This document shows positions 4,347 through 28,400 of a DNA stretch of 64,000 bases, in pieces (position 1 is the stretch's first letter; each line of letters begins with the position of its first letter). Location: the NCBI RefSeq assembly GCF_052425735.1, contig NC_135759.1, forward strand, positions 45,446,001-45,510,000, in the 5' to 3' direction. Under the pieces are notes generated by a model. The model did no database searches and had not been told where the DNA came from. It saw nothing but the letters and a program-made list of their open reading frames with translations. The translations under genes and the position numbers were made by a program. Source of the DNA: Oculina patagonica. Its lineage: Eukaryota.

Positions 4347-6214
4347 CTTGGTGTCAAGAAAATTATGTCGTCTGAAGTGAATCCATATTGAAATCCTAAA
4401 TGGTCTTGGTTTGATGCTCCATCCTCTATGAACAAAATCTGTAAGATTGATAAAAGAAAAAGGATTAAAAAATACAGTTTCTATTTATAACCTTATCGTT
4501 CAATCCCTGAAACTATTCAGGAACATCAATGACAACAAATAAAATAATATATTATGTGGAAGTGAAAGGTAAGGAAAAAACCAAAACCTAAACCCTATCT
4601 ACCATGGGTTCAGATTCTAATTAAAACAGACTAGCTTGGAATGACATACCCTAGACCATACCCTATCCAGTGGCATGTCCCTGTATAGGTAATACACCCC
4701 TCCCCACTTCCCCTCCCCCTCCCTCCCCTCCACCTCAACACCAGACTGACTGAACACAAACAAGGGACAAGAAATGGTGATGTCAACAATCACATTTCTG
4801 AACACCATTGACTTACTAAACACAAAATTGACAGGGACTCTGCTGAATGCTGAACCTACAGCACTAACTATTTTCAACAACTGGCTCTGGAAAGCTGGTA
4901 CTCAAAATTAGAACAGATGCTTATCAACAGATGTCAACAACTACGGGCACCTTCCAAACAACTTATTCACAACGTAAATAGAGCCAACGTAAATAGAACG
5001 TAAATAGAACCGACAAATGAACTGCCAACAGAACGACCTAATTTGACTAAAAATAGACGGAACAGAACAACTTAATTAGACTAACAATAGACGAATGGAC
5101 CAATTACTAATGACAAACTATACACAAGTCTTACAGCCAATAACATCATGGCTAAACTGACCAATCAACATCAACGGACCAGACTTATAACATCATCGAC
5201 TGACGACAACTTTTCACTTCACTCTGAAGATGACTTCGGCTCAGGTTGTCAAAACATCAGTCACCAACAACAGTTCTTCTTAGAACTACTCACACCCGGA
5301 CGATCACACTATACGATCACCTACTGATTTTTTTGACTAGATAGTAAGGATGGGCCGGTATTCGATACCAAATATTCGATAGACCGATATTTTGACAACT
5401 TTGAGAAGTATTGATACTTTCAAAAAATATTGCACTTTCGATACGATTTTGATACTGCACACATGATCTAAGCCTGCGGTCTTCTGGTCAGCACCTGAGG
5501 TTTAAAATGTAATTTTGCTCAAACAAATATTGATGTTCTTGTCAATATTTTATTTTTTTATTGCCTTGCCTGCTGTCCGCACATTGCTGATGCAAAAGTG
5601 AAACAAAAAGACAAAAAATCGACATTCATGGCATTCAATGATAATGTCAGGACATTCCTTTGTGTGGTCAGACAAATCACGTGGCATATTAACGACGTCA
5701 GAACAGAAATGATGTCATAATATCGATATCGATATTGTAACATTTTGCAAAAACCTGTATCAGCGGTATCCGGTCACCTCGCCACCAGGCAATCTCGCCA
5801 CCAACCAACTTGCCACCAAAACTGGTGTATTTCTCGTTCTTTAATCCATGACCCGAGGTGACTTTGCTTGGTGGCAAGATTGCTTTGTGGCGAGGTGACC
5901 GGCATTCGTATCAGCCCATCCTTACTAGATAGTTTTGGATTTACTTAATTGCGGCGTGACAGTGGCGTGACAGTGAAAACCAGCAGTGTCCCCGAGCGCA
6001 AACGGCGGGAAAACTGTTTACTATATTTAAAAAAATACCAGTACCAGCTATGCATGTTTAGCTTGCTGGTGGCGAAACATACCTTTCCAGATGTACTGAT
6101 TCCCAGTATTTTATCTTGCATTATTTCCATCTCATTTTGCGGGGTGGAATGAACAAAGGTTCCACGAAAAACATATGAGCACTTTTTCCACTCGAACTTG
6201 TCCGCGACCGCCAT
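4347..6214 (-). CDS. GDA: Guanine deaminase, 5' part (coding exons 6214-6083 and 4438-4347; the gene continues beyond the left edge)
   Basis: Exon 1 encodes MAVADKFEWKKCSYVFRGTFVHSTPQNEMEIMQDKILGISTSGK, matching the GDA N-terminus (human ...IFRGTFVHST...MEVLRDHLLGVSDSGK), with a GT donor. Exon 2 encodes ILFIEDGASNQDHLGFQYGFTSDDIIFLTP(R) with AG/GT sites and matches IVFLEE.... The next exon (PGxxDxHxH) was not found in 1-4346. Confidence 0.88.
4760..5325 (+). mobile_element. Penelope-like retroelement 3' remnant with decayed hammerhead motif
   Basis: Degenerate GIY-YIG C-terminal-like coding (NHIS.HH.LTKHKID.DSA.C...LESWY) followed by a pLTR-like tail actctgaagatgac...gtcaaaacatcagt. Confidence 0.6.
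5345..5924. mobile_element. hAT-type MITE with perfect 8-bp TSD (CTAGATAG) and a nested small element at 5771-5901
   Basis: TIRs TAAGGATGGGC / GCCCATCCTTA, with TSD at 5337-5344 and 5925-5932. Confidence 0.85.
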
Positions 6215-7230
6215 GTTGGATTGTTCTTGTCCTTGAGAGGTAGTTACAAAAGTCGGACCGGACAACTCGGATCGCTGATTTGAATAAGAATAGCAGCTAT
6301 TCAAGAACGCGAAAATACACAATAGATGGTGTTCTTATTTTAATCAATGATCCGAGTTGATCCGGTCCGACTTTTGTACCTACCCGTCCTTGAGTGGTCC
6401 CTTTATCCAGGCTTTATGGATGGTTTGTGTGGCACTTCTTCTTGGAGTATTAAAGCAGATCCAGCTATACACGTGTACACAGTGGATACAAATGCCCACA
6501 GGGCCACTGAACAGTGGCTATCTCATTCAAAATTCTCTTTCCAGCCTTCACAAAGGCAATTTTAGTTTCCATAGTAGCTGCATATCCATAGTGAATACTT
6601 TCTAGTGGGTCTCTATACCGCAGTGTAGGGAGTACGAGACAGTGTCCTCCCCACTCCCCTCTCTTCTCATTCTGGCTTTTCTGATCTGTGCCAGTCGACC
6701 GCTAGTCGACGCGCCAGTTTCACCCGGGACATTTTGTCACAACGACAAAATCACAAGCGTTATGGAAAATTCGGGCCAACAGACTTTAGTCCGGGCGAAC
6801 CCCTTGAATTGGGGGGTTATTTTTGGAGTTAAAATATGGTCATGGGGTTAAGAACATTTGCGGCACACGTCTATCCGAAAATTCTAAAAAAATTCCCTCC
6901 CCCCCTTCCCCGGGCTGCACCTTCTGCACAATTATACATTTTTAAAGTCTGATCAGTTAACTCTTTATGACTCTTTTAGCAGCCAGAATCTGAACAATCG
7001 TTAACAACTGAATTCCGTTTAGTACACTAACAAGTTTGCTGACTGAACTCGCAGAAAGTCAGGAAAGTCACGAACTATGTTTAGCGGTTACCACATGATG
7101 TCATCTAGCCCAGAAAAAAATTATGGCATCGTTCCAAATTTACAAACAAGGAGGGGAATTTGCGAAAACTAACTTCAATTTTCTGCTGTGTAATTTTCAA
7201 TGATCTGAAGCTAACAAGCCAACTGTAGAC

Positions 7231-7392
7231 ATGTCTGATGATGAAGACCAAAGCAGAGAGTATTTGATCAAGTTTTTAGCCTTGGGGGACTCAGGAGTCG
7301 GCAAAACGAGTCTTTTATATCAGTACACAGACGGTCATTTTAACCCTCGGTTCGTTCCTACAATCGGAATCGATTTCAGAGAAAAGCGCGTG
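7231..7392 (+). CDS. RAB27: Rab27 alternative (duplicated) first coding exon 1a
   Basis: Encodes [54 protein letters not shown], then gtaagt, a phase-0 donor at the same position as exon 1b. No separate downstream exons were found before 9539. Confidence 0.85.
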
Positions 7393-8669
7393 GTAAGTAT
7401 AATATAGACCCTTAATTATCGTTTCACTGAACGACTTCAAGCAAATTATGATATAAGGTTTCTCACTAGGAGAATTTTGAATGAAAGCCAGATATTTTTC
7501 GTAGTAATTCAATGTTTACTTAATATACCTGCACCAAGGAGACTGCACTCTCATTTATTTTTGTTATTCTCGTTTTATTATTTTTTGTTCGATTTTCTAG
7601 TGAAAACAACCGTGATTATACTTTGCAATTAAGCGCTGGATGCAATTTTGGCTCTAATCATCTACCGCAGTTTATTTTGTTGAGGGTATTTTTAATTCAG
7701 GTTTCAATTGTTGTTGTAACGAAAGGTGTTTATATGCAACCACACCGCGCCTCCTAGTAGGTTGATAATTGACTTATGCTGTTCTTTTGTAAGAATTTAC
7801 TTCTGAAGCACGCCCGATTGTGCTGAATTTTGAAAAAAATTATGACAGTCTCCAAGATCTTTTTATTCATATTTTTATGAACAATTTAATATCGTCAAGG
7901 ATCTTATAAAATACAAAAAAAGGATCTTATCAAAACAAAGGCGATATCGCGTCTTTTCGGGACACAAAAACATTTTAAAATTACTTCGCGCGTAAGTGAA
8001 ATAATTTTAGGCTGAGGTTTCCTTTTAAAACTCATGCATTATGCGATAGACAATCGATCATTAGCGAAACACTGAACAAATGACAATATTTTAGCAGGTA
8101 CCTGTCTGTTTATAAAGTCAACCTACAGATGGGCGGAGTTTTTCATAGTTCAGCCCTGCTTGCTGTTTGACGCTGTTATTACGTGCAGTGATTGGTTTTC
8201 TTTTTTATTTGACAGTAGTGTAGCTCAACTCTCGTCATCTTGTAATTTAACTGGTCCTCAAGTAAGGCTTTTTCATGGGGAAGAGAAGAGGGGAAGGGCC
8301 GTTATTTTAGGAAATTTTACGTCTCAAAGAAGCTGGTTAGCTTTATCTATTCTTTAATTTTTTTCTACGGTTCTGCATGCTATGCAACCAAGATACCACT
8401 TGAGGTTTTAATTTTAAAAGTCATGTTTCGATCTGAACAAATGCTGTTGTAAAAAACGTAAAAAACTCCCTGAACTTGCCAACTCAGAACAAGCTGTGGA
8501 TTGAAAAGTGTATCATTCTTAAAGAATTCGAAAATTTATATTTTATTATATTCCCATTTGGGTCGTACTGTCAGAGGAATTTCAATCAAGATTGAAGAAG
8601 AGCTGTTATGTTCTCAACGAGGGGATGTTGAGGAAGATCACCATGTTCTGCTTCAACTAATATTAAATA

Positions 8670-8920
8670 CCCATTTATACCATGCCATAGAAAATACAGC
8701 CAATCAGAATACAGGAAAGCCGTTGTATATTCGACGGTATTCAACCCAACCTTCCCATAGTGCGCTGCGACTGTATTTATACTATGGAATATCCCACTTG
8801 TCACTTGTATTTTCTTGGCATACACACTCGCCTAAAGGCTCGTGTCGTAGTATACCGAGAAAATACAAGTGACTCGTGGGATATTCCATAGTATACCACT
8901 CGAAAGCGTTGCATAACTAG
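8670..8920. mobile_element. Interspersed element with internal hairpin
   Basis: atactatggaatatcccac..gtcacttgtattttct / agaaaatacaagtgac..gtgggatattccatagtat inverted arms. Confidence 0.55.
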
Positions 8921-9435
8921 GACTAGTATATATTGTATCTTACTGACTGAGAATTGTCATTCGAAATTAACGTCCCTTGTTTCGACTGTTTCCAGTTCAG
9001 TTTTTTAAAAAAAAACTTTCTGTCGCTCTACAATTTTTGTCACAACCGCCTGATTTGCGAACACGCTAAAACGGTATGTTGCTTCATTTATTTCAGTTTG
9101 AGTAGAAATCTTTACGTAAAATGTTGCCTTTATTTTGAAATCTTTACACTGGCACGTTGTAATCTCTGTCTGATCTCTGTGTCGGTTTTCGGCCACTATT
9201 TTGGCGGTTTCCCACAATTGTGAATTGGTGTTAATTTCAAAGGTCAAAGTCATTGCTGTAATAAATATTGAATACTTTATAAGTCTTCAATATTGTGTAG
9301 TTTACTGCCCGTATATTGTTTCAGTAGAATATTCCAGTCTGAGAAAAGAAAATGACAAATGTCTGCTCACCCTTCTCCACCCAGCCGTCTAGTATTGCCG
9401 CCAAATTTCCACATTTACAATAAGAAACCACAAGT

Positions 9436-9478
9436 AACCAATCAGAAAGCGTAAGAGTTATCGACGGACCAATCAGAA
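9436..9478 (+). promoter_or_regulatory. Tandem CCAAT (NF-Y-type) boxes upstream of Rab27 exon 1b
   Basis: ACCAATCAGAA occurs twice (CCAAT at 9438 and 9469, 31 bp apart), about 70-100 bp before ATG 9539. Confidence 0.55.
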
Positions 9479-9538
9479 CAGCCGTTAGATAAACATCAGC
9501 TTATACCGCAAGTTTGAAGGAAAACTCCCGAATCAAAC

Positions 9539-12500
9539 ATGGCGGACGCAGATTATGATTATCTGCTGAAGTTTTTGGCTCTCGGAGATTCGGGCGTCGG
9601 TAAAACTAGCCTTTTATTTCAGTACACGGATGGAACATTTAATCCTAAATTTATATCTACCGTAGGAATAGATTTTCGTGAAAAACGAGTGGTAAGTGAT
9701 ATCTTTTGTTCAATTTATATTTTGTCATGAACATCCATTGACATCGATCTTTGTATTATTCCAGTGCGTTGAGAATTTTTATTTTCATTAATATTTTACG
9801 TCTAAGGGTGGATTCTTTATGCTTAAAGAAAATAATCACTAGTTTTCAGTAGAAATGTTATTTTAACTCGTATTTAACCGGCTATTTTAGATGCTGTAGA
9901 ACTTATCTTGTGTTTATACCCGTAGGCCCGTTCAGGCCCGTTCGTTGTGTTTTGCTTCATCCCACGCCAAAAAATGATTATTTGCTGTTATTTGACCGTG
10001 TACCGTAACTTAAATAGCGTTTTAAGATTGTTTGGTACAGGCAGCGGAAAATGAAAGTGTTGTTTCTACTTGGCATTGATTCGAAATAAAGCCAGCTGTC
10101 TTGTTTACAACACGATCTAGACATGACAAGATTTAAGCGGCATCTATGTTCATGATATTTCACATCTATTTAACACTTTCCTTCTAATTCGATCAGGCCC
10201 GGTACATTTGTTCAAATATAATGATATTTCTTCCCTGAATTATTCCCAAATCAGTACGGCATATAAGCTCATTTTGGTTCGTTACAAAATAGTGAACTCC
10301 GAAAATACCATATTGTTTACGACAGTTGAATATTTAAATCTTTTGTAGTCAAACAATATTCAGTTTCAATGTGAATTTTCACTGAAAACCGATCGAAGAA
10401 TCCCCACTAAAATTGTAATAAGGAAACGGAGAACTTTTAATGAGATATGAGAAGAAAATGGTGCCTCAAAATCTTCACACTTATTTCACACCATTAATTG
10501 TGTATTTTTTTTTCTTTTGAATTTCAAATAGCTTTACTGTGTGTTTCATAATTTTCAATTTCAAAATTTTTAATTCTAGATGGGGGTACCGTCTGGCACA
10601 CCACTGAAAATAAAACTCAAATGCCACAAAATCCTTACTAACATTATTTTACTATTTACAAAATAATTGTGTGGTTTCCCATTGAGAAAGTAACATTTTT
10701 AAACTGAAGAATGAAATTTAACATTCATGAAATTTTCAAGGGATAAAAACTCCTTTTTATTTTTCACCTGGCTGCCAAGTGACAAAAAAGAATGAGGGTC
10801 AAGCTGCTCTGAAGAACTGGTTTTCTAGGATAGTGAGGGAATATCTAACAATTTATTACAAGTTCAAATCTAACTTCATACAGATGAATAATAGTCGATA
10901 ACTTCTCACGTAGAAAAAATTATTGTGTATAGTCAGTCACTGAATTATTTTTCATGCTCACAAAACCAGCTGCCTTGGTTCTCTTGACATTTTGTTTTCT
11001 GCAACAAAAATGCAAATCTATGATTTAAGATTTGAATATTTTACAATTTTAGTTTTTGTTTGTCATTTATGTTGGCACAATGAAGCAGTTAAAAATAAAG
11101 TTATACCGGAGATGTCTCAAATTCTAGCTTTGTTGTTTTCTTAATTCTTGTCAACTACATGAATAAATCCTGTTGGCACAATGTAGCTCTTTGGTTTCCC
11201 ATAAAAAAAACCTGTCATTTCATCCACGACCTTCTCCACTATACATTTTGGTACATTTTAGCTATTTCCCTCCTCACAGCTCACTATAATACTAACATTT
11301 CTCTATGATTTGTGTGTATTTCTTAAAAATGATAATTATGTGGATTGTGGGGTGTGAAGCCACATAGCTATTTGCACTTCCTGTTGAAATGATATAAAAT
11401 AATAAATTATATATTAGAAGGAATATCAGTTCAAAACAGGGAAGGCTTCTTTAAATTCTTAAAAATGTACACATTGTTTTTAATAATAAATTATATTACT
11501 TTTGAATCATGGCAGAGCCTCCTGCCCATAATTTAGTAGCCCTCAGTTGACTTTTGTGGCTTTTTTAAAGGTATACAACTGAAGGTACATCACAGAAAAA
11601 TATTATTTAATAAACAGAATATATTCAGAAAAAAACACACGTGCATGCCTGAAAATCCTACGTTTCAGCACGTGTGCCCTCAGAGAGTTACCTTGATTCT
11701 GTTAGGGCTTGCTGGGTCCTTCCTTGAGGTTACAAAGTGAGTAATCCATGTAAAATTCCTGCAGATACATCATCCGCTAAATCCAGATGGAAGTCGTTCA
11801 ACAAGAGGACAGAGAGTACATCTTCAACTCTGGGATACCGCTGGACAGGAAAGGTAATAATGTTAAAAAAGTTTTTACCCTGTATTATGGGGCGCCCTAC
11901 TGTATAACTGTTTGTTATGTTAAAGGTAAAGGTTATTGGTACATGTATACAGTCTGTCCGAGTTAAAACTTAAGGATCATTATCAGTAAAACTTAATTAG
12001 GTGCTTTCATGTACCAGGTTGGCACATACAGTACAGTAACTCTCTCTGAGTATTTCTAACTGTAGTCAATAGCTGTGGCTTCCCTTAAATTGGGTAGCCC
12101 CTGTTTCCTTCCTCCCTCCCCACGTCCTTCCTTCCTTCCTTCCTTCCTTCCTTCCTGTCTATCTGTCTGTCTCTGTGTCTGTCTGTCTTCCTGCTTTTCT
12201 TTCTTTCCATGTTTATTTTTTTTTAACTCACTTTGATGTTAAATACTTTTTCAGACATTACATTAAGTTAATTAGCTAAATGACACAAGAAATTAAAATT
12301 GCTTAATTGTGGTTAATAATATTATAGTTTAAAGTTATTGCGTGTCAACGCTAACTTGCATGATTTGTAGGGAGCAGGGATGGTGCAGTGGTGAGAGCGC
12401 CCCCCTCCCCCCTATGTGGTCCGGGTTCGCTTCCGGCCCGGTCCATTGTGGGTTTTTTTTTTTTTTTGTTTTCCTCCTTTCTCCGGGGTTTTTTCCCCCG

Positions 12501-14349
12501 GCTCCCCCGTTTCCCCCCCCCCAAAAAACCACCTTTTTTTTTTCTCTCCAAACCAAACCCCCCCCCCTTCTCGCCCAACCCCTCCCTCCCACCCCCCCCA
12601 AAAAAAAAATATTTTTTTATTAATGTTTTTATTTTCAGATTTAGGAGTTTAACTACAGCATTCTTTCGAGATGCCATGGGATTCCTTCTAGTCTTTGATC
12701 TGACGCACGAGCAATCATTCTTAAATATAAGGAACTGGTTAAGTCAGCTACAAACACATGCTTACTGTGAAAACCCTGATATAGGTATGGGAAACCATCT
12801 TTCTTTACATTCTCCTTAAGGCCACTTAACATAGGTGAAAATGATTGGAAAATCCTCATTGAAACAGCCTATGGGTGCTTGCTGCTCCCTAATAGAGGTG
12901 GCCGCCATATACTGACAATGATTTTAGGACGTAACATGTGATTACTGAATACAAGTTCATCTTTCTCTGGTCAGCTGGCTTTAACAAGGGTTGCCACAGG
13001 TCAGGGAAAATAAAAATTCTTGAAGGTCAGGGAAAAGTTTGGGAATTATATTTTGAGTCAGGGAAAATGGACATTTTGAAGAAAAGTCAGGGGGTATTGC
13101 TAACGTACCACTGCATCGGGGGTGTTAGTGCAAAATAGGTTTCTCCAAGCAATTTTTTCAGGTTGCTCAATAGTTCTCTTGTCCCTCTTGTAGACAGAGA
13201 CACCATTAGAGTAGAGCTTCCTGCCCAAGAACACTTGTTAACCCAATAAGAGGGTCCTGCCCAAACCTACGCTCTTGTTCCAGTGTTCAGTGACCATGAT
13301 CCAACTGCACTTAAAGAGAAAATAACTGTTGTTTATTGGAGAGCTGTTATTGACCATTGTGCAAATTGTTGTTTACGTGCCAAAATTTCTTATTTGACCA
13401 TTTCTACTTGAGCAAAGCAACACATGTATATTCTTGACTTGTTTATGTAAAGTACCAATGTGTTGTATTTCTTTTTTCAGTTCTTATTGGAAATAAAGCA
13501 GACCTGGAGGATCAGAAACAAGTAGATGAAAATGAAGCAAGAACACTTGCAGAGAATCTGGGTCTGAAGTATTTTGAGACAAGTGCATTTAATGGACAGA
13601 ATGTGAGCAAGTCTGTAGAAGCTCTGCTTGACCAGGTGAGAACTGGCTGTTGATTGCGTTGTGATTTCAGGGTTACAGTAAAAACCTGTGTGTAAGAACC
13701 TACTGGCAGAATTTTCCATTTTGATACCCCAATATATATTAAAAACCTGTTTAGCCAAGCAAGATCAAGCAGTTTCCTATACATGGGTTACAGTTACAAT
13801 TATGATAAACATTTTAACTAAGGAGTTTGACTAAACACTACATACATGTATACACAATTATCCACCTAAGCTAACAGTAGCCTAGGCTAACTAGAATGGA
13901 TCCCATGTTACTTATTTTTAAACGTTGGTGTGATATCCGAAATGGAATTTTTACCGATGTAATAACATGTAGATGTAGTTGCCTAGATGCCTCACACTTT
14001 GTGACGACCCAATAAGGATTGCTATTGCCTTTGGATGATATGTTGATCTATCACAGTCTTAAAACCCAGCAACTCTCTCATCTCTAAAGTCCTTGTAATG
14101 TTTCTTTCAAGAGTTCAAAGTTCTTTAAGGTGAACAAATAGCACTAAGTCAAGTTCCCATAACGTCACTCATCTCTATATTATTTTTGACTGATTTTTTT
14201 TTATCTTGTAGGTTATGGCAAGAATGGAAAACTGTGTCGATAAAGCCACATTACCTAATAATGTTTTTAACAACAACCCAAACAGGGGCACAAAACTAAG
14301 AGAAGTTGATGAAGCAAATGATGAATCTCAAGGGGGCTGTTCCTGTTAG
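9539..14349 (+). CDS. RAB27: Ras-related protein Rab27 (exons 9539-9691, 11765-11853, 12639-12784, 13481-13635, 14212-14349; about 226 aa)
   Basis: Motifs [64 protein letters not shown] and C-terminal GGCSC* (CxC prenylation). All introns are GT-AG with consistent phases. Confidence 0.96.
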
Positions 14350-15163
14350 ATAAAACATAATAATGTTACTTCACAAAATAATGTAATTTTAAGGTGCATA
14401 TGTAATTTTAAGGTGCATATGAAAATATTATGAATGAACTATTTTCTTTTTAAATAGGAATTTATTATCTTAATATTATGAATTTGAAAAATTGTAAATT
14501 GCCTTAACACTAAAAATTTCAAACTTGGTTTGAAATTTGTTAGGGCTAGTGTAAACATTGCAACTTCGAAATTCATTCGTTAGGTTGCATGTAGGAAAAT
14601 CACTTTTCAGTAAGTAGGTTACAAGGCAATGGTTTGCAAAGAAGATTGCTAAATTTGGACTTTCTTAGATTTAATATTTGATAATTTTAAAAATAATAAA
14701 CTAAAATACTTTCATATGCACTTTACAATGTACAACCTAGTATATAAAACTAGACCTAATTAATAATTAACCAGAACAGCTGTGGTTAGGTGTTTATAAT
14801 AGCAGTATTTATTGTGTGGATAGAGATGCATGGCAAGTTTACCATTTTGGCAAAGTCCAAGTTTTTATTTGTGATAGTGGAATGAATAAATAAATTGGGT
14901 CAAATTGCCCACAATATGGATAATTTGAAAAAAAAACATTTTCCGTATTATATATAAAATGTTTTGGCAACACAAGTGGAAACTATTTTGATCAACTTCA
15001 AACCTTTGCAATTGTTGCCTTACTGAAGCAAGCAGTTTGAAATTAGACTTTCTTACATGGAATAGCCAGTTAGACTGAATATACTGTCTTAAGTTGGTTT
15101 TTTTTTTTTCAACGATTTTTTATAACCATGGCTGTATTTATATCTTAACTACACTTCTACTTA

Positions 15164-17390: not shown

Positions 17391-19425
17391 CAGCCAACAG
17401 TACCACTGATCAGAGTGGATTGAAGTCACAGCAATTTTTTGCAAACACACACGACTCCCTCAGTGTCCAGCAGTGCAGGTAATGATCAGCGGTTCTACGG
17501 ACTTTCCAAGCGACCCCACCCCACGTACCCTTGGACCCTTTCTCAAGTTCCCAGGTGACTGTTATCTTACTTTTGTTACTCGAGCGAAGCGAGCTTAAGG
17601 ACCGTTAGGCCGCGAAGTGGCAGAGCGAGCGACTAAGTTGCGAGAACTGAAAAGGGCCACCCTTGTCAACATCCTTGGTGCTCCAAGCTTCCTCCTGCAT
17701 GATAATGAATGCTAAGTTTCGTGTCCTTTATCATATTCATATCATGCAAGAGGTAGCTTGAAGCACTAAGGATGTTTACTAGGGTGGCCCTTTTTGTGGT
17801 GCACGTGATGGGTGGGCCGGCCCCGCGGGAAAATATGGAGGGGTAGGGGGGGACCGACCGGGAGCGGGGAGAAGACGACTCAGGAGGAGGCCCGTGGACC
17901 CGTACGTGCGCGGTAGTGACGTCCACTGCGGGGGGAGAGACTCGCGGACAAGACCAGGAGCGGGTGAAGGACGGGGACCCCTGTCTGGTTGACGCCGGGT
18001 CACCACGCCGGAGGGGACACGTACTCGGGCATGCGCAACAGGGACGGAGGGGTGGGGGGGGTCGACGGCGGAGCGACGCCTCGTCACCTCGGCGCCCTCC
18101 ATGGATGGACGGCGCTCGGGGAGGGGGGCGGGGAGGACCGGGGCGAGCGATGGGGGGGGGAGGGAGGGGGGTGGGCGGAGGCCGGGGAGGGGGGGGGGGG
18201 GGGGGGGGGGGAGGGGGGGGGGGGGGGCGGGGGGGGGGGAGGGGCGGGGGGGGGGACACGCACTCATGTCCAATGCACTGCACACAAATCATCGAGATTT
18301 TTCAATTATCATGCTCCTACCCCTGACATCCCTGCCAAGACCGAGTTATGGTTTCGACCCTTCTTGTCCTGTAGAACAGTTTATATAGCTTGTCACTCAG
18401 TAAAAGAAACGAATTTTAAAAAAAACATAATTCTCGGGAGCCGAGGTAGGGGATAGCTCGGGAGATCTGTCTGAGGTGGGGCCGCGGGGGTTGTGACGCG
18501 CTGTCATTTGGACTGAACTCTGTGCCAGAGGGTTGATCGCGGCACTTTCGACCCCCCGACCTAGGAGAGCGGCGATCTGCTATATTTTTTTTTGTGGCTC
18601 TAGCCTATCGTTTCGAATAAAATAATAATAATCAATAATACGTTAGTAGGGGACAATAATTATAATAATAATAATAATAATAACTTTATTTAAGTCTAGT
18701 CTTCTAGGTAGCCTTAGCTTACTAGTGGGGCCAGTGTTTAAACTAAAATATATATATACACGATCTCTTACATAATTCACTTTTCCACACTAACCTCCAT
18801 AGAACATTACGGTCGACATATTTAATACTTATATGTTAATCCTCCCTAATTAATTACATATTACATACTTAACTACATTGTAACCAATGATTTGTGTCAT
18901 GACTGTCAAGTGCAGGCACGCGCCTGGAGCCATAATGACAGTAATTATTGTGTTTTTGGAAGTAAACACTACATTCAGACGAATGACAGTTAGGTCGATT
19001 GTTTTTTTATTCTTCGCCGTTTTAAGGTGTTCAAGTATAGACATTAAAGGGCGATTATTTCGATCTCTAGTAAATCATTATAAACCCTGGAAATGGAGTT
19101 ATGGTTTCAGCATTTTGTTCTACAAAGGCATTTGCCATTTTTTTTTATGCCTTCATTGTCACACACGCTATAGAATGCCCTGTGCTTCAGTGTAGTCATC
19201 CACGGGCAGTTCCAAAGTTCATCAGTCCAAGACGACCAAGACTGGTTGATTCTTACTGGCACTGAGGATCTGGGACGAGTTTCTTTCCGCCATTTTAGCA
19301 AGGCTTGGTTACCTGTGCACAGCTTGTATTTCACATGCACTGTACTCCACTGCACTTCAGGTGAAGTCTTCTGCCAGATATATTCCTTTAGACCTTTCAA
19401 GCTTTTGCTTTTTGACAGTCTTAAA

Positions 19426-22400
19426 ATGTCTTTTTCACCTGGTGACTTAATCTGGGCGAAGATGCGAGGCTATCCACACTGGCCCGCGCGGGTAAGTACT
19501 ACAACAAGATGATTTGGAATCAAAGCAAAACCTTGCGTGGCTTTTAAGACCTTTTAATAATTTCTGGAAACTCGAGTAGCTTTGTTATTTCATTTGAGTT
19601 TTTTTAATCTCCATTTAGATTGATCTTGCTTCACCAGAAGAGAAGATTCCTTCCAAGAAATTTCCAATCTTCTTCTTTGGAACACACGAGACGTAAGCAC
19701 ACCCGAGGTTTTTTTGTAGATCGACTAATTTGGCTTGCAAAACTGCGGCTGCAATCTTGTTTGTAGTCTTGTTTAGTGACAGGCTATTTTTTGTTATGCC
19801 ACGGACGTATTATTATTATTATAAGTATTAGTATTATTATAAGTTTTCGTGATTACTTGATTATCTGTGTACAAAGCCTTGCAAAACACGTCAAATCTCG
19901 TTTTTCAACTGTTGTGTATTAGGGTCAAGATTTTAGTACATGTATGCTGAAGGATTTTCAACCGTGTTTAAATAAAGTAATCTATAGGCATAGGCAGTAG
20001 AGCAGAGGGGCTGTAGCGCCCCCCCCCCCCCCCCCAAGTTTTGGTGCCAAAAGTATCGTGAGCACAGCATAACATTGGTTTCTCAAAATAATTATTCTTA
20101 AAAAAAATAATATGTGAGTGAGTTCAAACATCTTCAAAATTGCCTTGGAAGTCTTCAGGAAACTTTGTTTCTCTACAGAAAAGTTTGAAAAATGATCGGA
20201 AACCTTCCTACGGCTTCGAACAATAATCAGAGAATCTTCCAAAATCTTTGGTCTAGAAACTGCTCAGGAGACAAAAAGGTTACTAGAATGGAAAAAAAGT
20301 TGCTCCAAATATGAAAATCTGCTGAGTATTTTTAGGACAGTCTTAGCCCTCCATGTTCCAAAACCCTCCACCGCCTCTGATAGGTCACTCCATATTTGCA
20401 GTTGTATCGGTAAACAAGTGCAGTTAGACTGCAAGTAATGTCTGTTCTACACAATAGTTGGCACTTTTAGACCACTGAGCTACAGGAGCCACGTGGAAGC
20501 TAGGCCATATAACTATAGGTTTAGTTGTGACAAACTGCTAGTAGTATTACCGGTATTGTTGAAGAGTGAGGATCTGCAAGGAAGTAAATGGTGGTAGTTT
20601 TGAGCTTGGACAAAGATATTATTCTTTCAGTAAATAATATTCTCATTGCCTTTCTCCATGCTAAAAATATACATGTACCATCATTTATTTCCATAATAAT
20701 TATTATTTTTTTGTAACTGGTATATATTGTTGTTGTAGATCTTAAGTAATCGTTTCCTTATCTGCTACATTCATTTTTGCACTTCTAGAGCTGTAATGCA
20801 AGCTAAAGATCTGTTTCCATATGAGAAGAACAAGGATAAGTTTTTGAAAAACTCAAACCGATCTCGAAAAGGTTTCAAGGAAGCATTAGTGGAAATTGTG
20901 GAGAATCCAAAGGTTAAGTGGGGGATGAGAGGACAGGAAGAGGATGATGATGATGACGACGACGACGATGAGGAGGATGAGTCAGCTGGAGAAGAGAAGT
21001 CAGGAGATGAAGAATCAGATAAAGAAAGCACGGATAAGGAAGTTAGTAAACCATCGCAACATGAAATGCTCACATGTGACAAGTACGACCCACACAAGTA
21101 CTACTCATGACCCACCCACCCATGCGATATAGCATCACCCGTTTATGATGGTTGTTGTAGTTATAAATTTCTTAGACATCTTTTTAACGGGTCACATGTC
21201 AGTTAATAATAATATTTATTTAAATGCTTTCTTGTAGAAGAAAACAAAAAAAAAGAAGGAAAAAAAGAAGCAAGCGCAGCAGAAGAAAACAGCCAAATCT
21301 GAGTCTCCAGAAAAGGTTTGATACTGTATCACTCTTATTACCATAAAAACTCGTGTATAAGCCGCACTCGTAGATAAGCCGCACCCCCAAATTTCAAAAA
21401 TATTTTTAAAAAAAAAAAAAAAACTGGGGAAAAAATGCCCCGTTTTTTTTAAAANNNNNNNNNNNNNNNNNNNNNNNNNNNNNNNNNNNNNNNNNNNNNN
21501 NNNNNNNNNNNNNNNNNNNNNNNNNNNNNNNNNNNNNNNNNNNNNNNNNNNNNNNNNNNNNNNNNNNNNNNNNNNNNNNNNNNTNNNNNNNNNNNNNNNN
21601 NNNNNNNNNNNNNNNNNNNNNNNNNNNNNNNNNNNNNNNNNNNNNNNNNNNNNNNNNNNNNNNNNNNNNNNNNNNNNNNNNNNNNNNNNNNNNNNNNNNN
21701 NNNNNNNNNNNNNNNNNNNNNNNNAAAAAAAAAAAGTTTTGAAAAGAAGGGGGGGGGGGGGGGGGGGGGGGTAATAATGATTGTTCATTAACCTGGATCA
21801 AGAATTTACCTTGGTCCTACATTGTGTACAGATGTAGACACTGTTACTGATGTACTATTAAAAATTATTACTGGGGACCAGCAAATTAAATGCTGGGGGG
21901 GGGGGACCTGCAATGGACGTAGGATCCCATCCAGGCAGGGGTAGAAATAGTCCTAGTTGCTTCATGCTACGAAAACTAAGATAAGCTGCAGCATGATGGA
22001 CCACTTGGCTTAAATGCACATGTTCCAAGCGACTGTTGTTTTCTTGTTCTTCAGGAAAGTTCTTTTGAAGAAACACCAGACGAGGAAAGTTCAGATGAAG
22101 ACAAAGAGGAAGTGAGTACTTTACAAACAGAACGGTGAAAAGACACAACTTATGGCAGCTTTGTTGTTATTTGATCAGAACAAACAAATGAAGTTTTAAA
22201 ATCAATTCTGCAACAGATTTCACTTTCAGTGCTGTGCATTATAAAAATTCATTTACATGACTTTATACTAACAGCAACTGAGAGGATTCTCTTGCAGTCT
22301 CTGGTTAAGAGAGCTCTATGGTTTATGGGAATATAGACCAAGAAAATGATGTAACCTGAAACACAATGTTAGGCTAATTTCAGAAAACTTGAGAAACTCT

Positions 22401-25400
22401 TGCCACTTTATCAAAACCAAAGTTCGGCAAGTTGTGAAATGTCAATTGAAACATTTAGAGTAAAATGTTCCAAAGCTTCAAGTGGAAAAACTGTAATCTT
22501 AACAACAATCTGTCACATGCTCATGCAACTTTAGGCTGAATTTCTGTCTTGTTTTCTATCAAGTGAGCATGGTTGATTTGTCAAATACATGTATCTTTCA
22601 GTTGCACTAATAATCAGTGTCATGGTACCAAGTTGTTATGATGATGATGACAGTGACATGACTGCGTAGCAATGCAATACTAATTGGAGCTTGTTTAATG
22701 AAAGGACCAGATTTTCCTGTAATACCCACCCCCAATACATTAAAGGTATAATGTGTTGTTTGTAGGAATATAAACCTGTTCCCAAGAAGAGAGTGACTTC
22801 CAAAGAGTCTGGAAAGAAAAGGAAATCATCAAAAGTTGTCAGTGACAGTAGCAGCAGTAGTGATGAAGACCAGGCTGATAAGAAAGTAAGCGTAATTAAA
22901 ATGTTGTAAGGTTATAAGACTAACACTACCAAATGAATGTGTTTATCACGCTTTCTTACCTTGGAAATTCACATAAAAATACATGCATGTACAATGTACT
23001 ATGAAATTGCAACTTCTGCATCCCAATTCAATAACCAATTATACACCCAGTCAGTCAGTCCGTCCATCTGTCTGTCTGTCTGCCTGTCTGTCTTTTTGTC
23101 TGCCTGCCTGCCTGCCTGCTGTTCTTCTCAGTAATCTGTTAGTTCTAGCCCTAATGAACGTCACTTCATGTTCTTTGTACATGTTTACCCTAAAATTACT
23201 AGTAAGAAACTGAGATCAAGGGAGATTATACACATTTATCAAGTTCTGGAAAAGGCTTTTCATTGCCCGGTATCGTAGAACTGCGGTGACACAAGGGTAA
23301 AATACATGGTACATTCTTAGTCTTCACTACCAATTATTTAAGGATTTTATTAGTTATTATAACCAATCAGGATTATGCAGTGTACCTCTTTATTTATTTT
23401 CTAACATTGTATTCCATTTGATGTACTATCACTCTTACAGGATGTAAGTGACAGTGATGAACCAAAGAGCAAAAAAGCAAAATTAAAAATGGAACCCGAA
23501 GAAAAGGCGAAGAACCAGCAGCCAAAAGAAGAAGGGAAAAAGAAGAAAGAGGAAGATAAAAATAAAAAGAAAGATGAAGAAGAGAGCAAGAAGAAAGATG
23601 AAGCTGAAAGGAAGAAACAGGAAAAGCTACAAAAACTAGAAGAAAAAAAGTACGTACTAATTGAATGTTTGGATTTCTAACTTTAATGTCCTTTAATGTT
23701 GTGTTATGTTACTTGGATGTGCAGTGTGAATTTAATGAGGGACTACATGCATATGCATGCTTTTCTGGCCCTATCCCCCACCCAGGGGGCAAGGATTTAA
23801 GAGAGACATGCATTTGGAGAGACGAATCATCACTGCTGGTACTTAAACTTTGGTTTCTTTTTGAGGAGGAGTACATGTATTGCTACTCCCCTTGGAAACC
23901 ATGCAAGATGTACACGTACCTCCATCTCAGGACATAGTGAAGTCTCACATTTTTTCTAACAATTTGCTTGTACCCATTATTACTCCTGTCTGAGAGGAGG
24001 TTTGTCCCATCAAAGTGAAATACATGTACATGTATCTTGCCCAAAAATACAACACTATGTCCCATGCAGTGCTTGATCCCTGTCCTCTTGATGTGGAGTC
24101 CAGTCCAATAGTCACTATGTCATGATTTAAAGTTACATGTACATGCATGTAGTTTGCTTAGATTATACACTGTGTGCTGCCAGGTGAAGAATTTACTCCA
24201 ATCAATGATTTGGCTTTTGTCTGTATTCTGAACGTCAAAACATTACTAACAACTTAATGCAACAGATTTCTGAGTACTAAAATCTTAATCACAGAACTCA
24301 TGAACAACTGTATGAACATTTTATTGTCATTGTTTCAGAGCAATGTTGAAAGAAAAGAAGAAAAAAGAAAAACTTGAACAAAGGAAAGCAGAGAAATTAG
24401 CTGCTGAGAAAGCTAAAATGGAAGAGAAAGAAAAAGAAAAGCAAAGAGAGAAGCAAGAGCGGGAAAGAGAAAAGGAGAAGTTACGAGCCAGACAAGAGAG
24501 AGAGCGAGAGAAGGCAAGGGAAAGAGCAGAACGAGAAAAACAGAAAGAGGAAGAAAGAAAAGAAAGGGAAAGAAGAAAGTGTAAGTAGTGAAAAAATTCA
24601 GCAAGATGTGGTTCCTGGCTGTTAACAATATTATGATCATAATGATGTAAGCTCAAATGTGGCACTGTTTGATTGCTTCACTTATGATTTTTTTGTGTAC
24701 AAACCTTTGTGTTGGGAGAATAGCGAGCTTGTAAACACTGTAAGTTCTTTATTAATGGCCTTCCTCAGGCCCTTCATTGAAGTGATGCTAAAAATATCAG
24801 CTGCTAAGAGTATTATAACGTATAATGTCAGCTTTCATGTTCCAAGTATGACGCTTACATATGTATTCTTCCATTAGCTACACCGCCCACTGTGGAAGAG
24901 ATATTGGACAAAATGAATTATGAACTTGTGATGTCACTGACAGTAGAGGCTCCTGTAAGTAATTTACAAGTCAGGACGTCCTCAAGCGTCCCTATATTTC
25001 CTATTTTTTTTCAACCCCCTTTTTTTTCCCTAAATAGTTTAGAAAAGCCCTATAATTCCTATAATTCAAAGGACCTCAGTCAGCTACACTTTGAAATCGG
25101 TGAAATCTGCAATTTTCATTGCCCTCAAAATAATTATGAAAGTTGTATAATGAAGCAAAGTCTTATTTGCATTGTTCTTCACATTTACTCCCGCCACACC
25201 CCAAATTCAAATTTGATAAGGCTATAAAGAGCTCCATACATGACATGTTGAAAATACTTGAAATCCCTATATCGCTCTATATTTCTTTAAAAACTTCCCT
25301 ATATTTTGGCAGGAGGCCACTTGAAGCACTGAAGTGTTTACTGTAACTCAACAATGCATTAAGAGTAAAGAATTTTTTTTCTTCAATGAATGAAGAGTAA

Positions 25401-28400
25401 ACTTATTTTTGAACCAAGAATAGGATAACCATCTCACCACAAGTGTCTCTGTAGTTCAGTGGTGCGGAAGTTCATGAGCGCGATTTGCGTTCGTGAGGCA
25501 ATTTTTTTCTTTGGCTGACATTCACGACAAAAATTAAATTGTCCTCATAATGTTTGAATGTTCTTTTTTTATGTGATGTTAATGTGACTCCATTCAATAT
25601 AGCAGTGTTTGCCCCCTTTGCCTGCGGGGCTTTCGGAGGCGGCCGGGCCCTCCCCCCCCCCCCCCCCCACTTCTGAATCATAATATTATTTTGTTGTTTC
25701 GCTCTCAGGACGTCCCAAGGTGTTTAAAAATTATCAATCAGATCTCAGAGATGGCAATCAACCCAGATATCATCAAGAAAAACCCAGAAATAGTTCAAAC
25801 CATCAAAAGGGTAGGTGATTCATTGTGTTGTACATGTGGTGCTGTGTTATGACACGTCCTGTTATTATTATTTTCTATGCTATCTTGAAACAGTTATGCC
25901 CTCCAGAAATTAAACCAATTAAGACAAATACAGTAATTTTCTCTTGCTTTTTTTGGACGTTTAGGGTGTTTCATCACAATCACTCGCAAATATTAGTTTT
26001 ACTGTGCAGTGTATTAGTTTCCCAAAAGTTCTTTTTTTTTTCAGAAAAAAAGATTGTTTATGAATGTAAGAAATGCTGGGGCAAGTGACTGGAACTCGCT
26101 ACCTATAGAATTAAAAAAAAAAATTAAAAATTTTTTTTTTAAACTAAATTTTTTTAAACATTTAAAAAAAATNNNNNNNNNNNNNNNNNNNNNNNNNNNN
26201 NNNNNNNNNNNNNNNNNNNNNNNNNNNNNNNNNNNNNNNNNNNNNNNNNNNNNNNNNNNNNNNNNNNNNNNNNNNNNNNNNNNNNNNNNNNNNNNNNNNN
26301 NNNNNNNNNNNNNNNNNNNNNNNNNNNNNNNNNNNNNNNNNNNNNNNNNNNNNNNNNNNNNNNNNNNNNNNNNNNNNNNNNNNNNNNNNNNNNNNNNNNN
26401 NNNNNNNNNNNNNNNNNNNNNNNNNTGTACCCGCTCAGCTTTCAATAAGAGTGCAGAATCTTTTGACAAGTATTAAGATATTAAGATATGCAGTGTCAAC
26501 AACAGATATATGTATTTATTATATAAACTGCAGTGGTATAGCGAGTGGTAGCAAATCGAGGAAAATGGTATCACACATGTGTGGATAAAAATGATATCCA
26601 CACATGTGTGATATCATTTTTGACCAATCAGCTCGCAGCGTTTGCCGTGTTTCAATGCTCAATCAACCAAATTTTATCGATATTAAGTGGATATTAAGTC
26701 GGAGTTCGGATCTTCCTTGGCAATCTTTGGTAATCTTCGGAAAACTTCGGAAATTTTGATAGAAGTTCGGAGAAGTTCGGAACCATTCGTACGACCTTCG
26801 GAAAACATTTTGAAAATCTTCGGAAATCTTCGGAAAATTGTGGAAACCTTCGGAAAATTGTCCAAAACATCATAATTAGTAGGTGTATATAAAAAACAGA
26901 ATAATACATGGTTGCTTGGATATATGAAATTTATCTTCTCGTGTCTTCAAAACCGATATCTCACTCATTCGCTGCGTTCACTCGTGAGCTATCGATTTGA
27001 ACACTCGAAGATAAATTTTATATCTCCATGCAGCCATGTATTATCCTCTGTAAGTTACAGATGTGTGTATTGGTAGTGTCAGACGAATCTTTAGAAATGT
27101 GCGAGCCAATTCTTTGCGCTAATAAGTAATACTAATTTGCATTCCAGATAAGAAATTACAAACAAAATTCTAAAGTACGAGAAAGAGCGAGCCAGCTGTA
27201 TACTCAGTTCAAGTCACTGTTTACAGTCGCTGGATCAGGTCAGTGAACTACTTAAGTAACACAGTTGAACGTTCTTAATTATATTTTGGTTTGACATTGG
27301 AAGAACTGTTCAATATTTTTATCGCTTGGTGGTTATCAAGACTGAAGAGCATAAGCCGTTTAAACCTATTTCCTCCTGCAAATGTTTGGAAGAAAAATAT
27401 TTTCATGGTTATAGCTGTCCACTAAGATTCAGTGTAAATAATTTGGGTGTTCCTTTTCTAATATTTTGATCACAGTAAGGTCCTTTGGGAGGCGTGGTGG
27501 CCTGTAAGCGGGCTGGACTCCAGCTCAAGTGGTCCAGGTTTAAGCTCTTGCCGGGGTCGACATGTTGTGTTTTGGGGCAAGATAAGTTACGCCAACAGTG
27601 CTTCTTTCTGTTCTTTACACCTCGGGCTATAAATTGGTACTGGCGAATTAAATGCTTGTGGATACCCTTCGGACGTATTTAGACTAGTATCCCATCCAGG
27701 GAAAGAATAAAAACTCTGAAGATAAACGCCTGCCTGATGGGCCACTTGGCACGAATTTGACGTTACTTATATTACACTGTACGTTAATTTTACAAAAGCT
27801 GTCGTCGAACGTTATTTTTCTTTCGCAATTGCATCGTGTGCGTACCATATGTTTAAGGAGACCACGGTTCTTGCTTTTAGTGGTGTTTAATTAAACGTGC
27901 AGGAGTGCTAAATCAAGTTTAAAACACGAGGCGCAGCCAAGTGTGGTAGACTTGATAAACACGAACTGTGAGTTTATTGATGGCTTCAAAAACCTCTGAT
28001 CTTTTCATTTTTGCACTGATATTTAGATTTTGGGTTATTTTGGCCAAGAAAATTTGACATAAAATTTAGCCGTGTCTTTGTTAGATATAAAGACACTCAT
28101 TAACATTAATTTTCTCTGCATTTTCTTTATTGAAAATTTCAGAATCTACTGTAAACGTAGCGCCGGCAGCCAGCTCGAATAACGAAAGTTCTGCTCATGA
28201 TTTGTCATCTGTGGATGGCAACGAAAGAACACAAGCCACGACAGCAGAAGCCACAAGTAAACCCGAGATACCAGAAGAGAAAAACACACAAACCCACTCC
28301 ACACCTACTGAGAATGGAAGTGATCATCCTGTCCCCTCCGCTGGTGAGTAAAAATTTTCCAATGTCAATCATGAAGCATTTCTTTCAGTATACACCGATT

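Follow-up and report, generated by a model that had tools for sequence, protein, structure and literature searches.

Alternative first coding exons of a Rab27 gene in the coral Oculina patagonica and other anthozoans

Rab27 governs regulated secretion, with roles in granules, lysosome-related organelles, and exosomes. Vertebrates have two Rab27 proteins, Rab27A and Rab27B, which have overlapping effector sets and are encoded by two whole genes, and both proteins carry the DYDY and FITTVGIDF motifs. Human RAB6A and RAB6A' are Rab isoforms that arise from a duplicated exon. Homologous alternative exons derived from tandem duplication are a known class, in which one exon is used at a time, the arrangement is ancient and conserved, and the isoforms are identical outside the swapped segment (PMC8373072, PMC9741552). 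The subject of this report is a 64,000-nucleotide stretch of the Oculina patagonica genome (contig NC_135759.1, positions 45,446,001 to 45,510,000 of the forward strand; hereafter the window) that contains a Rab27 gene with two alternative first coding exons, 1a and 1b. The coral likewise has two Rab27 proteins per organism, and the vertebrate pair are their closest relatives; however, the coral uses one gene in which the first 51–54 residues are swapped and one of the two versions has a derived switch I. The coral Rab27 pair is a further case within the known class of homologous alternative exons. The classic tandem-duplicated exons are internal cassettes chosen by splicing, whereas the swapped exon of coral Rab27 is the ATG-bearing first exon, and the choice is therefore most likely made by promoter use. 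Our explanation is that a single Rab27 gene underwent an ancient tandem duplication of its first exon, that 1a or 1b is selected by promoter, and that the swap retunes partner binding; taken as a whole, this explanation is probably correct. Where vertebrates duplicated the whole gene, here a single gene yields two GTPases by module exchange, and this arrangement has persisted from before the divergence of stony corals and sea anemones.

Gene structure, conservation, and age of the exon pair

Exons 1a and 1b lie ahead of one set of exons 2–5 (Table 1), and AG/GT borders are present on all four shared exons. Joining 1a or 1b to exons 2–5 gives intact open frames of 229 and 226 amino acids, respectively, and both frames terminate in GGCSC, a double-cysteine prenylation motif. 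Both first exons stop in phase 0 after REKRV. Isoform a from residue 55 is identical to isoform b from residue 52, so the difference is confined to the N-terminal segment, the P-loop, and switch I. Each first exon encodes the P-loop GDSGVGKT and the threonine of switch I (in PTIG or STVG), and the DTAGQE and NKAD motifs are encoded by shared exons and are hence common to both isoforms. The two N termini read QSREY in 1a and ADYDY in 1b, and the switch I segments differ as listed in Table 1. The initial annotation of this DNA, made from the letters alone, had described two intact ATG-bearing first exons with the same phase-0 gtaagt donor ahead of one set of exons 2–5. Its coordinates are exact, and the codon strings, the switch I pair, and the QSREY/ADYDY contrast that it quoted all agree with the sequence.

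Table 1. Features of the Rab27 locus and its upstream neighbor, in window coordinates.
Feature	Position	Strand	Content
Exon 1a, coding part	7231–7392	+	ATG, 54 codons; phase-0 gtaagt donor at 7393; acidic N terminus ending REY, P-loop GDSGVGKT, switch I (FVPTIGIDF)
Exon 1b, coding part	9539–9691	+	ATG, 51 codons; phase-0 gtaagt donor at 9692; N terminus with DYDY, P-loop, switch I (FISTVGIDF)
Shared exon 2	11765–11853	+	Rab27-specific loop IHHPLNPDG..., DTAGQE motif
Shared exon 3	12639–12784	+	Switch II and the next helix
Shared exon 4	13481–13635	+	NKxD motif, here GNKADL, and onward
Shared exon 5	14212–14349	+	C-terminal tail, CSC prenylation motif, stop codon
Conserved block upstream of 1a	7064–7104	+	AAAGTCAC ... 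CTATGTTT ... TGATGTCAT, cAMP response element (CRE)/ATF-like motif
Conserved promoter-like region of 1b	9395–9523	+	TTGCCGCCAAA, two CCAAT boxes, GTTAGATAAA, GCAAGTTTGAAGGAAA
CCAAT boxes	9437–9444 and 9468–9475	+	ACCAATCA(G)
Guanine deaminase first coding exon	6083–6214	-	E 5e-6 to human GDA N terminus
Dispersed repeat between 1a and 1b	8673–8920		Hairpin with 46-nucleotide arms, 8778–8823 / 8850–8895, 91% complementary

The Acropora orthologue was compared with the Protein Data Bank by phmmer, and the best matches were human Rab27A (E 7e-98) and Rab27B (about 1e-90), followed at a distance by Rab3 (about 1e-48) and Rab8 (about 1e-45). Exons 2–5 of the window share 84–87% nucleotide identity with the Acropora mRNA, and exon 1a shares 78%. 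A tblastn search of the window found exactly two Rab27-type first exons and no further Rab27-like piece. Across the full 529-Mb assembly, a search in six frames likewise returned only 1a and 1b; the next-best match to the Rab27 first exons was 47% identical and belongs to other Rabs. Because only two such exons exist genome-wide, the locus is a single-copy Rab27 gene with two first exons rather than two genes. Judged by its sequence, the gene belongs to the Rab27 subfamily and is the sole Rab27 gene of this coral.

Exons 1a and 1b are homologous. They share 51 alignable codons, and 37 of the 51 residues are identical (76% over 50 residues by tblastn). The aligned codons differ synonymously at 23 positions and non-synonymously at 14, and nucleotide identity is 66%. 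In a 44-codon core, the Nei-Gojobori proportion of synonymous differences (pS) is 0.86, which is saturated, and the proportion of non-synonymous differences (pN) is 0.11. A haplotype or assembly duplicate was considered and rejected, given an identity of only 66% between the exons and the conservation of each in other species.

The locus was compared in Exaiptasia, Nematostella, Dendronephthya, Porites lutea, Porites harrisoni, a Montipora-like coral, and this coral. The order 1a, 1b, exon 2 is kept in all seven genomes, which span stony corals, two sea anemones, and an octocoral. In the six fetched loci, 1b starts 0.8–5.6 kb past the end of 1a, and no first exon lacks its ATG or its phase-0 GT donor. 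When the 44-codon core was compared pairwise among hexacorals, the 1a orthologues showed a pN of 0–0.08 at a pS of 0.5–1.0. The 1b orthologues gave a pN of 0–0.07 among hexacorals, and not more than 0.09 when the octocoral was included, again at a pS of 0.5–1.0. Exon 1a of this coral and that of the Montipora-like coral are separated by no amino acid change, with synonymous sites saturated. Exon 1a is neither missing nor decayed in the relatives; its ATG, frame, and donor are intact in the seven genomes. At the level of these codon comparisons, strong purifying selection on both exons is shown in stony corals and sea anemones. The initial annotation had proposed an old duplication under purifying selection, and this proposal is borne out by the saturated pS, the low pN, and the retention of both exons across genomes.

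The amino acids that set 1a apart are equally constant. Among 343 fetched proteins, 23 are 1a-type, and a 13-residue 1a motif is found in 22 of these; the exception reads FNLRF. The other 229 Rab27 sequences, most of them bilaterian, all lack FVPTIGIDF, and FI[ST]TVGIDF occurs in all but two of them. Numbered as in human Rab27A, the changes that are fixed in 1a and specific to it are Tyr6 to Arg/Lys, Asp7 to Glu, Lys37 to Arg, Ile39 to Val, Ser/Thr40 to Pro, and Val42 to Ile. These residues and the loss of DYDY are fixed in 23/23 1a-type sequences from stony corals and sea anemones, while neighboring positions vary.

A maximum-likelihood tree of the exon-1 core places the hexacoral 1a exons in one clade (support 99/97) inside Rab27, on a long and well-supported branch. 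The 1b exons do not separate from the bilaterian Rab27 sequences in the same tree. This placement indicates that 1b is ancestral (bilaterian-like) and that 1a is derived. By these comparisons, the duplication is older than the split between Scleractinia and Actiniaria. Published molecular clocks date that split to more than 500 million years (My) ago. The octocoral Dendronephthya gigantea has an upstream exon (L013:6001–6186) that is intact but very divergent, with a pN of about 0.3 to both 1a and 1b, and it includes FVSTIGMDYREKYL. This exon sits on a long branch that groups with 1a in the best tree, but the approximately unbiased test does not reject an independent octocoral duplication (p = 0.26). 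A homologue search with the octocoral first exon (P0343, residues 1–62) returned nothing. The octocoral upstream exon would be either a fast-evolving 1a orthologue or the product of an independent duplication.

Transcripts that contain exon 1a or exon 1b

Window positions 6000–11900 (5,901 letters) were compared with Logan contigs from four RNA-like runs, which came from four studies and three coded organisms and represent this coral or close relatives. A GT..AG joint from 9691 to 11765 was present in contigs of all four runs, and the 1b-to-exon-2 splice is therefore real. Exon 1a was covered in two of the four runs. A 194-nucleotide (nt) contig of run X4 is unbroken over 7064–7253. A 251-nt contig of run X2 lies on 7156–7392, and its alignment ends precisely at the 1a donor with 11 further letters beyond. 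The depths of the 1a contigs are about 1/10 to 1/7 of the 1b depths, although contig depths reflect expression poorly. These data show that exon 1a is transcribed in this coral, and they are consistent with splicing at the 1a donor.

Spliced 1a-to-exon-2 transcripts were seen in Acropora only. Nine Logan contigs encode a 229-residue protein of the 1a type (P0325), and we examined five contigs for this protein and one for a second protein (P0321) from six Sequence Read Archive runs. The 1a-type contigs are 1.3–3.1 kb long with an unbroken coding sequence of 690 nt, and for this reason they are spliced mRNA. Mapped onto the window, they run from 7255–7392 to 11764–11853 and on through exons 3–5, and 1b is skipped. 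Mapped onto a genomic contig of the Montipora-like coral (L023), the same contigs show at least 170 nt of collinear 5' untranslated region (UTR) followed by 1a and then exon 2, again without 1b. Transcripts that join 1a to exon 2 are thus represented by Acropora contigs from at least six runs and by the annotated RefSeq isoform pairs described below. Neither result that would have overturned the initial annotation, a lack of transcripts with this joint or the loss or decay of exon 1a in related species, was obtained. The 1b-to-exon-2 contigs, the 1a-to-exon-2 contigs, and the RefSeq pairs agree that each mature transcript has one first exon. Splicing of 1a onto 1b through the AG at 9517–9518 was considered and rejected; the shifted frame would end at a stop after 12 codons, and the joint was absent from those listed. 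Both first exons are almost certainly real and used.

Choice of first exon and possible meaning of the swap

The sequence upstream of each first exon is conserved. The positions of the block at 7064–7104 are invariant in this coral, the Montipora-like genome, Porites lutea, and the Acropora mRNA 5' UTR, and for the 1a transcript this block would be core promoter or part of the 5' UTR. Ahead of 1b, a stretch of 160 nt has a mean column identity of 81% in three scleractinian lineages, even though saturation has been reached at synonymous sites. The 1b contigs start at 9527–9538, and the 1a contig end is at 7064. RNA contigs cover the 5' UTR of the guanine deaminase gene up to about 6585, and that gene is transcribed away from 1a. 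The 1a transcript starts at or before 7064, and its start is therefore less than 0.5 kb from the divergent gene. The two genes may share a bidirectional promoter. Separate promoters for 1a and 1b are likely, as judged from these upstream regions. The initial annotation had called the isoforms promoter-selected. That view gains from the conserved upstream block of each exon and from the distance of less than 0.5 kb between 1a and the divergent gene, and it is likely to be right.

An ancient tandem duplication of the first coding exon would have left 1b as the proximal, ancestral-like exon and 1a as the distal, derived one. The choice between them would be made at the start of transcription. The 1a transcript would begin beside the divergent guanine deaminase gene and read through 1b, which would then be removed within intron 1 since no acceptor ahead of 1b is used. 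The 1b transcript would begin at its own promoter with the two CCAAT boxes. The 1a-specific residues would retune some partners, such as effectors, the guanine nucleotide exchange factor (GEF), the GTPase-activating protein (GAP), or the Rab escort protein/GDP dissociation inhibitor (REP/GDI), and the partners that read the shared switch II and subfamily motif 4 (SF4) regions would be kept.

Several observations weigh against this explanation, and they concern the transcripts, the start sites, and the protein in turn. At the transcript level, the joint 9691 to 11765 was found as described above, but the joint 7392 to 11765 was absent from the joints listed for the four runs compared with 6000–11900, and exon 1a was uncovered in two of these runs (X1 and X9). 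These gaps would fit the idea that 1a belongs to another transcript or is an unused remnant of a tandem Rab27 copy since lost. This idea is already contradicted by the spliced Acropora mRNA contigs that join 1a to exon 2 and by the 1a-type RefSeq isoforms of several species. The ATG, frame, and donor of 1a are intact in seven genomes with a pN of 0–0.08 at saturated synonymous sites, and the match of the run X2 contig ends at the 1a donor. We consider the relic idea extremely improbable.

The second set of observations concerns where the transcripts begin. The 5' positions given above for 1a and 1b are contig ends. A Montipora 1b-type contig (L025:1–43 versus L023:10941) leaves the genome at AG/G, 20 nt before the ATG, and continues with 43 foreign letters. 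The window has the same gaag/gaaaac at 9515–9524, and an AG also lies ahead of 1a (ctgaag at about 7204–7209). This contig raises the alternative that 1a and 1b are internal, mutually exclusive cassette exons that are served by one shared upstream promoter and a non-coding leader exon. However, the only match of the 43-nt leader is imperfect and is found in the Montipora-like locus on the other strand, upstream of the gene and about 5.5 kb away, which looks like a repeat or a chimeric contig. A Porites 1b contig is collinear with its own genome through the candidate acceptor. Collinearity of the 1a contigs with the genome extends upstream of the ATG by at least 167 nt in this coral and by at least 170 nt in the Montipora-like genome, and no joint into the 5' side of 1a or 1b was listed in the four runs. 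The conservation of the 160 nt ahead of 1b, with its two CCAAT boxes, also speaks against cassette exons. We read the Montipora leader as a repeat or chimeric join, although it may be an upstream non-coding leader exon, and a cassette arrangement is quite improbable.

The third set of observations bears on the protein. The complementarity-determining regions (CDRs) belong to the Rab3 and Rab27 effector interfaces, and CDR1, the N-terminal segment, together with switch II residues confers the Rab27 specificity of melanophilin (PMC5902227). The initial annotation had suggested that the isoforms may differ in effector specificity, possibly for a specialized secretory cell such as a cnidocyte or gland cell, and the swapped part does contain CDR1. 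The alpha3-beta5 loop and helix alpha5 make up the SF4 pocket, in which the WF motif of Slp2a sits (PMC6450061). Both switch II and the SF4 pocket are encoded by shared exons in the coral gene, and most of the fixed differences between 1a and 1b are conservative (K/R, I/V, V/I). The isoforms could therefore be nearly equivalent biochemically. The corresponding alternative holds that both isoforms are made and equivalent, and that the duplication matters only in providing two independently regulated promoters; the coding part would have been copied since the ATG lies in the first exon. The conservative nature of most fixed differences in the G-domain core, the position of the major effector determinants in shared exons, and the different conserved motifs in the 1a and 1b upstream regions all favor equivalence. 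A purely regulatory role of the duplication is a serious rival, but on balance it is unlikely. The 1a-specific residues and the DYDY loss are fixed in every 1a-type sequence while their neighbors vary, the long branch of the 1a clade suggests rapid change that later gave way to constraint, and the N-terminal CDR1 segment is a known determinant of Rab27 specificity (PMC5902227).

Retuned partner binding thus takes a limited form in our explanation. Since switch II and the SF4 pocket are shared, retuning of some partners, and not a wholesale change of the effector set, is most likely. The retuned partners could be effectors that contact CDR1 or switch I, or alternatively the GEF, GAP, or REP/GDI. 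A genuine difference in partner binding or kinetics between the isoforms has about an even chance of being correct. A genome scan with the FYVE_2 (PF02318) Rab-binding domain gave one locus over the cutoff, but exon-by-exon matching of this kind is too insensitive to count effectors. The sequence is identical past residue 54, and any isoform difference in effectors, GEF/GAP handling, or localization therefore maps to a few fixed residues. The locus is a natural domain-swap experiment, and the same two exons are present in the tractable anemones Nematostella and Exaiptasia.

A more far-reaching version of the explanation can be formulated. The 1a/1b swap would be more than 500 My old and common to all Hexacorallia, perhaps to all Anthozoa, and it would be the cnidarian counterpart of vertebrate Rab27A/B. 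Transcription of the derived 1a isoform would be driven by a separate promoter in certain secretory cells, the isoform would recruit a partly different set of effectors or regulators, and the octocoral upstream exon would be a fast-evolving 1a. This combination of claims is tentative and, as a whole, rather doubtful.

Public annotation and neighboring sequences

The annotated isoform pairs were reached by word-index searches limited to the 1a region followed by cluster look-up. Searched by phmmer with exon 1a, a set of 1.84 billion representatives gave fragments that are 89–98% identical and continue into differing introns; these fragments are genomic calls from other corals. The RefSeq entries named ras-related protein Rab-27A-like, isoforms X1 and X2, are an orthologous pair with 1a-type and 1b-type N termini, common exons 2–5, and the same genomic order. 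Isoform X1 is a 229-residue 1a-type protein and X2 a 227-residue 1b-type protein in Acropora millepora (XP_029212073.1 / XP_029212074.1), A. muricata, and A. palmata. The lengths are 229 (X1) and 226 (X2) in Porites lutea (XP_073240901.1 / XP_073240902.1), and Porites harrisoni adds two GenBank proteins. X1 and X2 have 232 and 228 residues in Actinia tenebrosa (XP_031553974.1 / XP_031553975.1) and 233 and 228 residues in the octocoral Dendronephthya gigantea. The labels are reversed in Exaiptasia diaphana, where the 1a-type protein is X2 with 231 residues and X1 has 228 (XP_028514550.1 / XP_020899163.1). After REKRV, both members of every annotated pair are identical. At least seven anthozoan species already have the pair in RefSeq, and the arrangement is not new to the databases. 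These RefSeq pairs are automatic annotations that are silent on origin, age, and function, and Oculina is a further species. A literature search found no published description of a cnidarian Rab27 isoform pair.

Several public models of this gene are wrong, among them models that place the first exons in tandem, that fuse Rab27 with its neighbor, or that file 1a apart. Exon 1a of Nematostella is filed as a separate 134-residue "predicted protein" beside a 227-residue Rab27 model. The only model with 1a and 1b in tandem is the 799-residue A. cervicornis protein KAK2565117.1, a GenBank and not a RefSeq entry, which is fused to the next gene. Downstream of Rab27 in the window lies a PWWP/LEDGF-type gene (19411–30852, + strand), and both KAK2565117.1 and an 803-residue Porites lobata model (CAH3154842.1) wrongly fuse Rab27 with the PWWP gene. 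An Actinostola sp. model (P0161, 215 residues) has about 60 residues unlike Rab27 between 1a and the resumed shared exons, and a model from the rotifer Adineta steineri (P0151, 239 residues) contains one 22-residue segment twice.

Repeats were noted on both sides of exon 1a and within the gene. An inverted-repeat stretch that resembles a miniature inverted-repeat transposable element occupies 6240–6394, within the guanine deaminase 5' UTR. In three runs, RNA contigs skip it through joints from 6240/6262 to 6384/6394 that lack GT..AG and carry 12–21 other letters instead; the stretch looks like an insertion in this assembly that is missing from the sampled relatives. The dispersed repeat between 1a and 1b is matched by hundreds of RNA-like contigs in all four runs, with summed depths of thousands to tens of thousands, and it is outside the coding design of the gene. 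An Rfam search of 6000–15000 gave no match, including for this repeat. The intron between exons 2 and 3 contains, at 12100–12620, a low-complexity CT-rich tract followed by a tRNA-like stretch at about 12370–12440 (...ggtgcagtggtgagagcg...ggttcgcttccggcc...) and long C/T/A runs, and this segment may be a degraded tRNA-derived short interspersed nuclear element.

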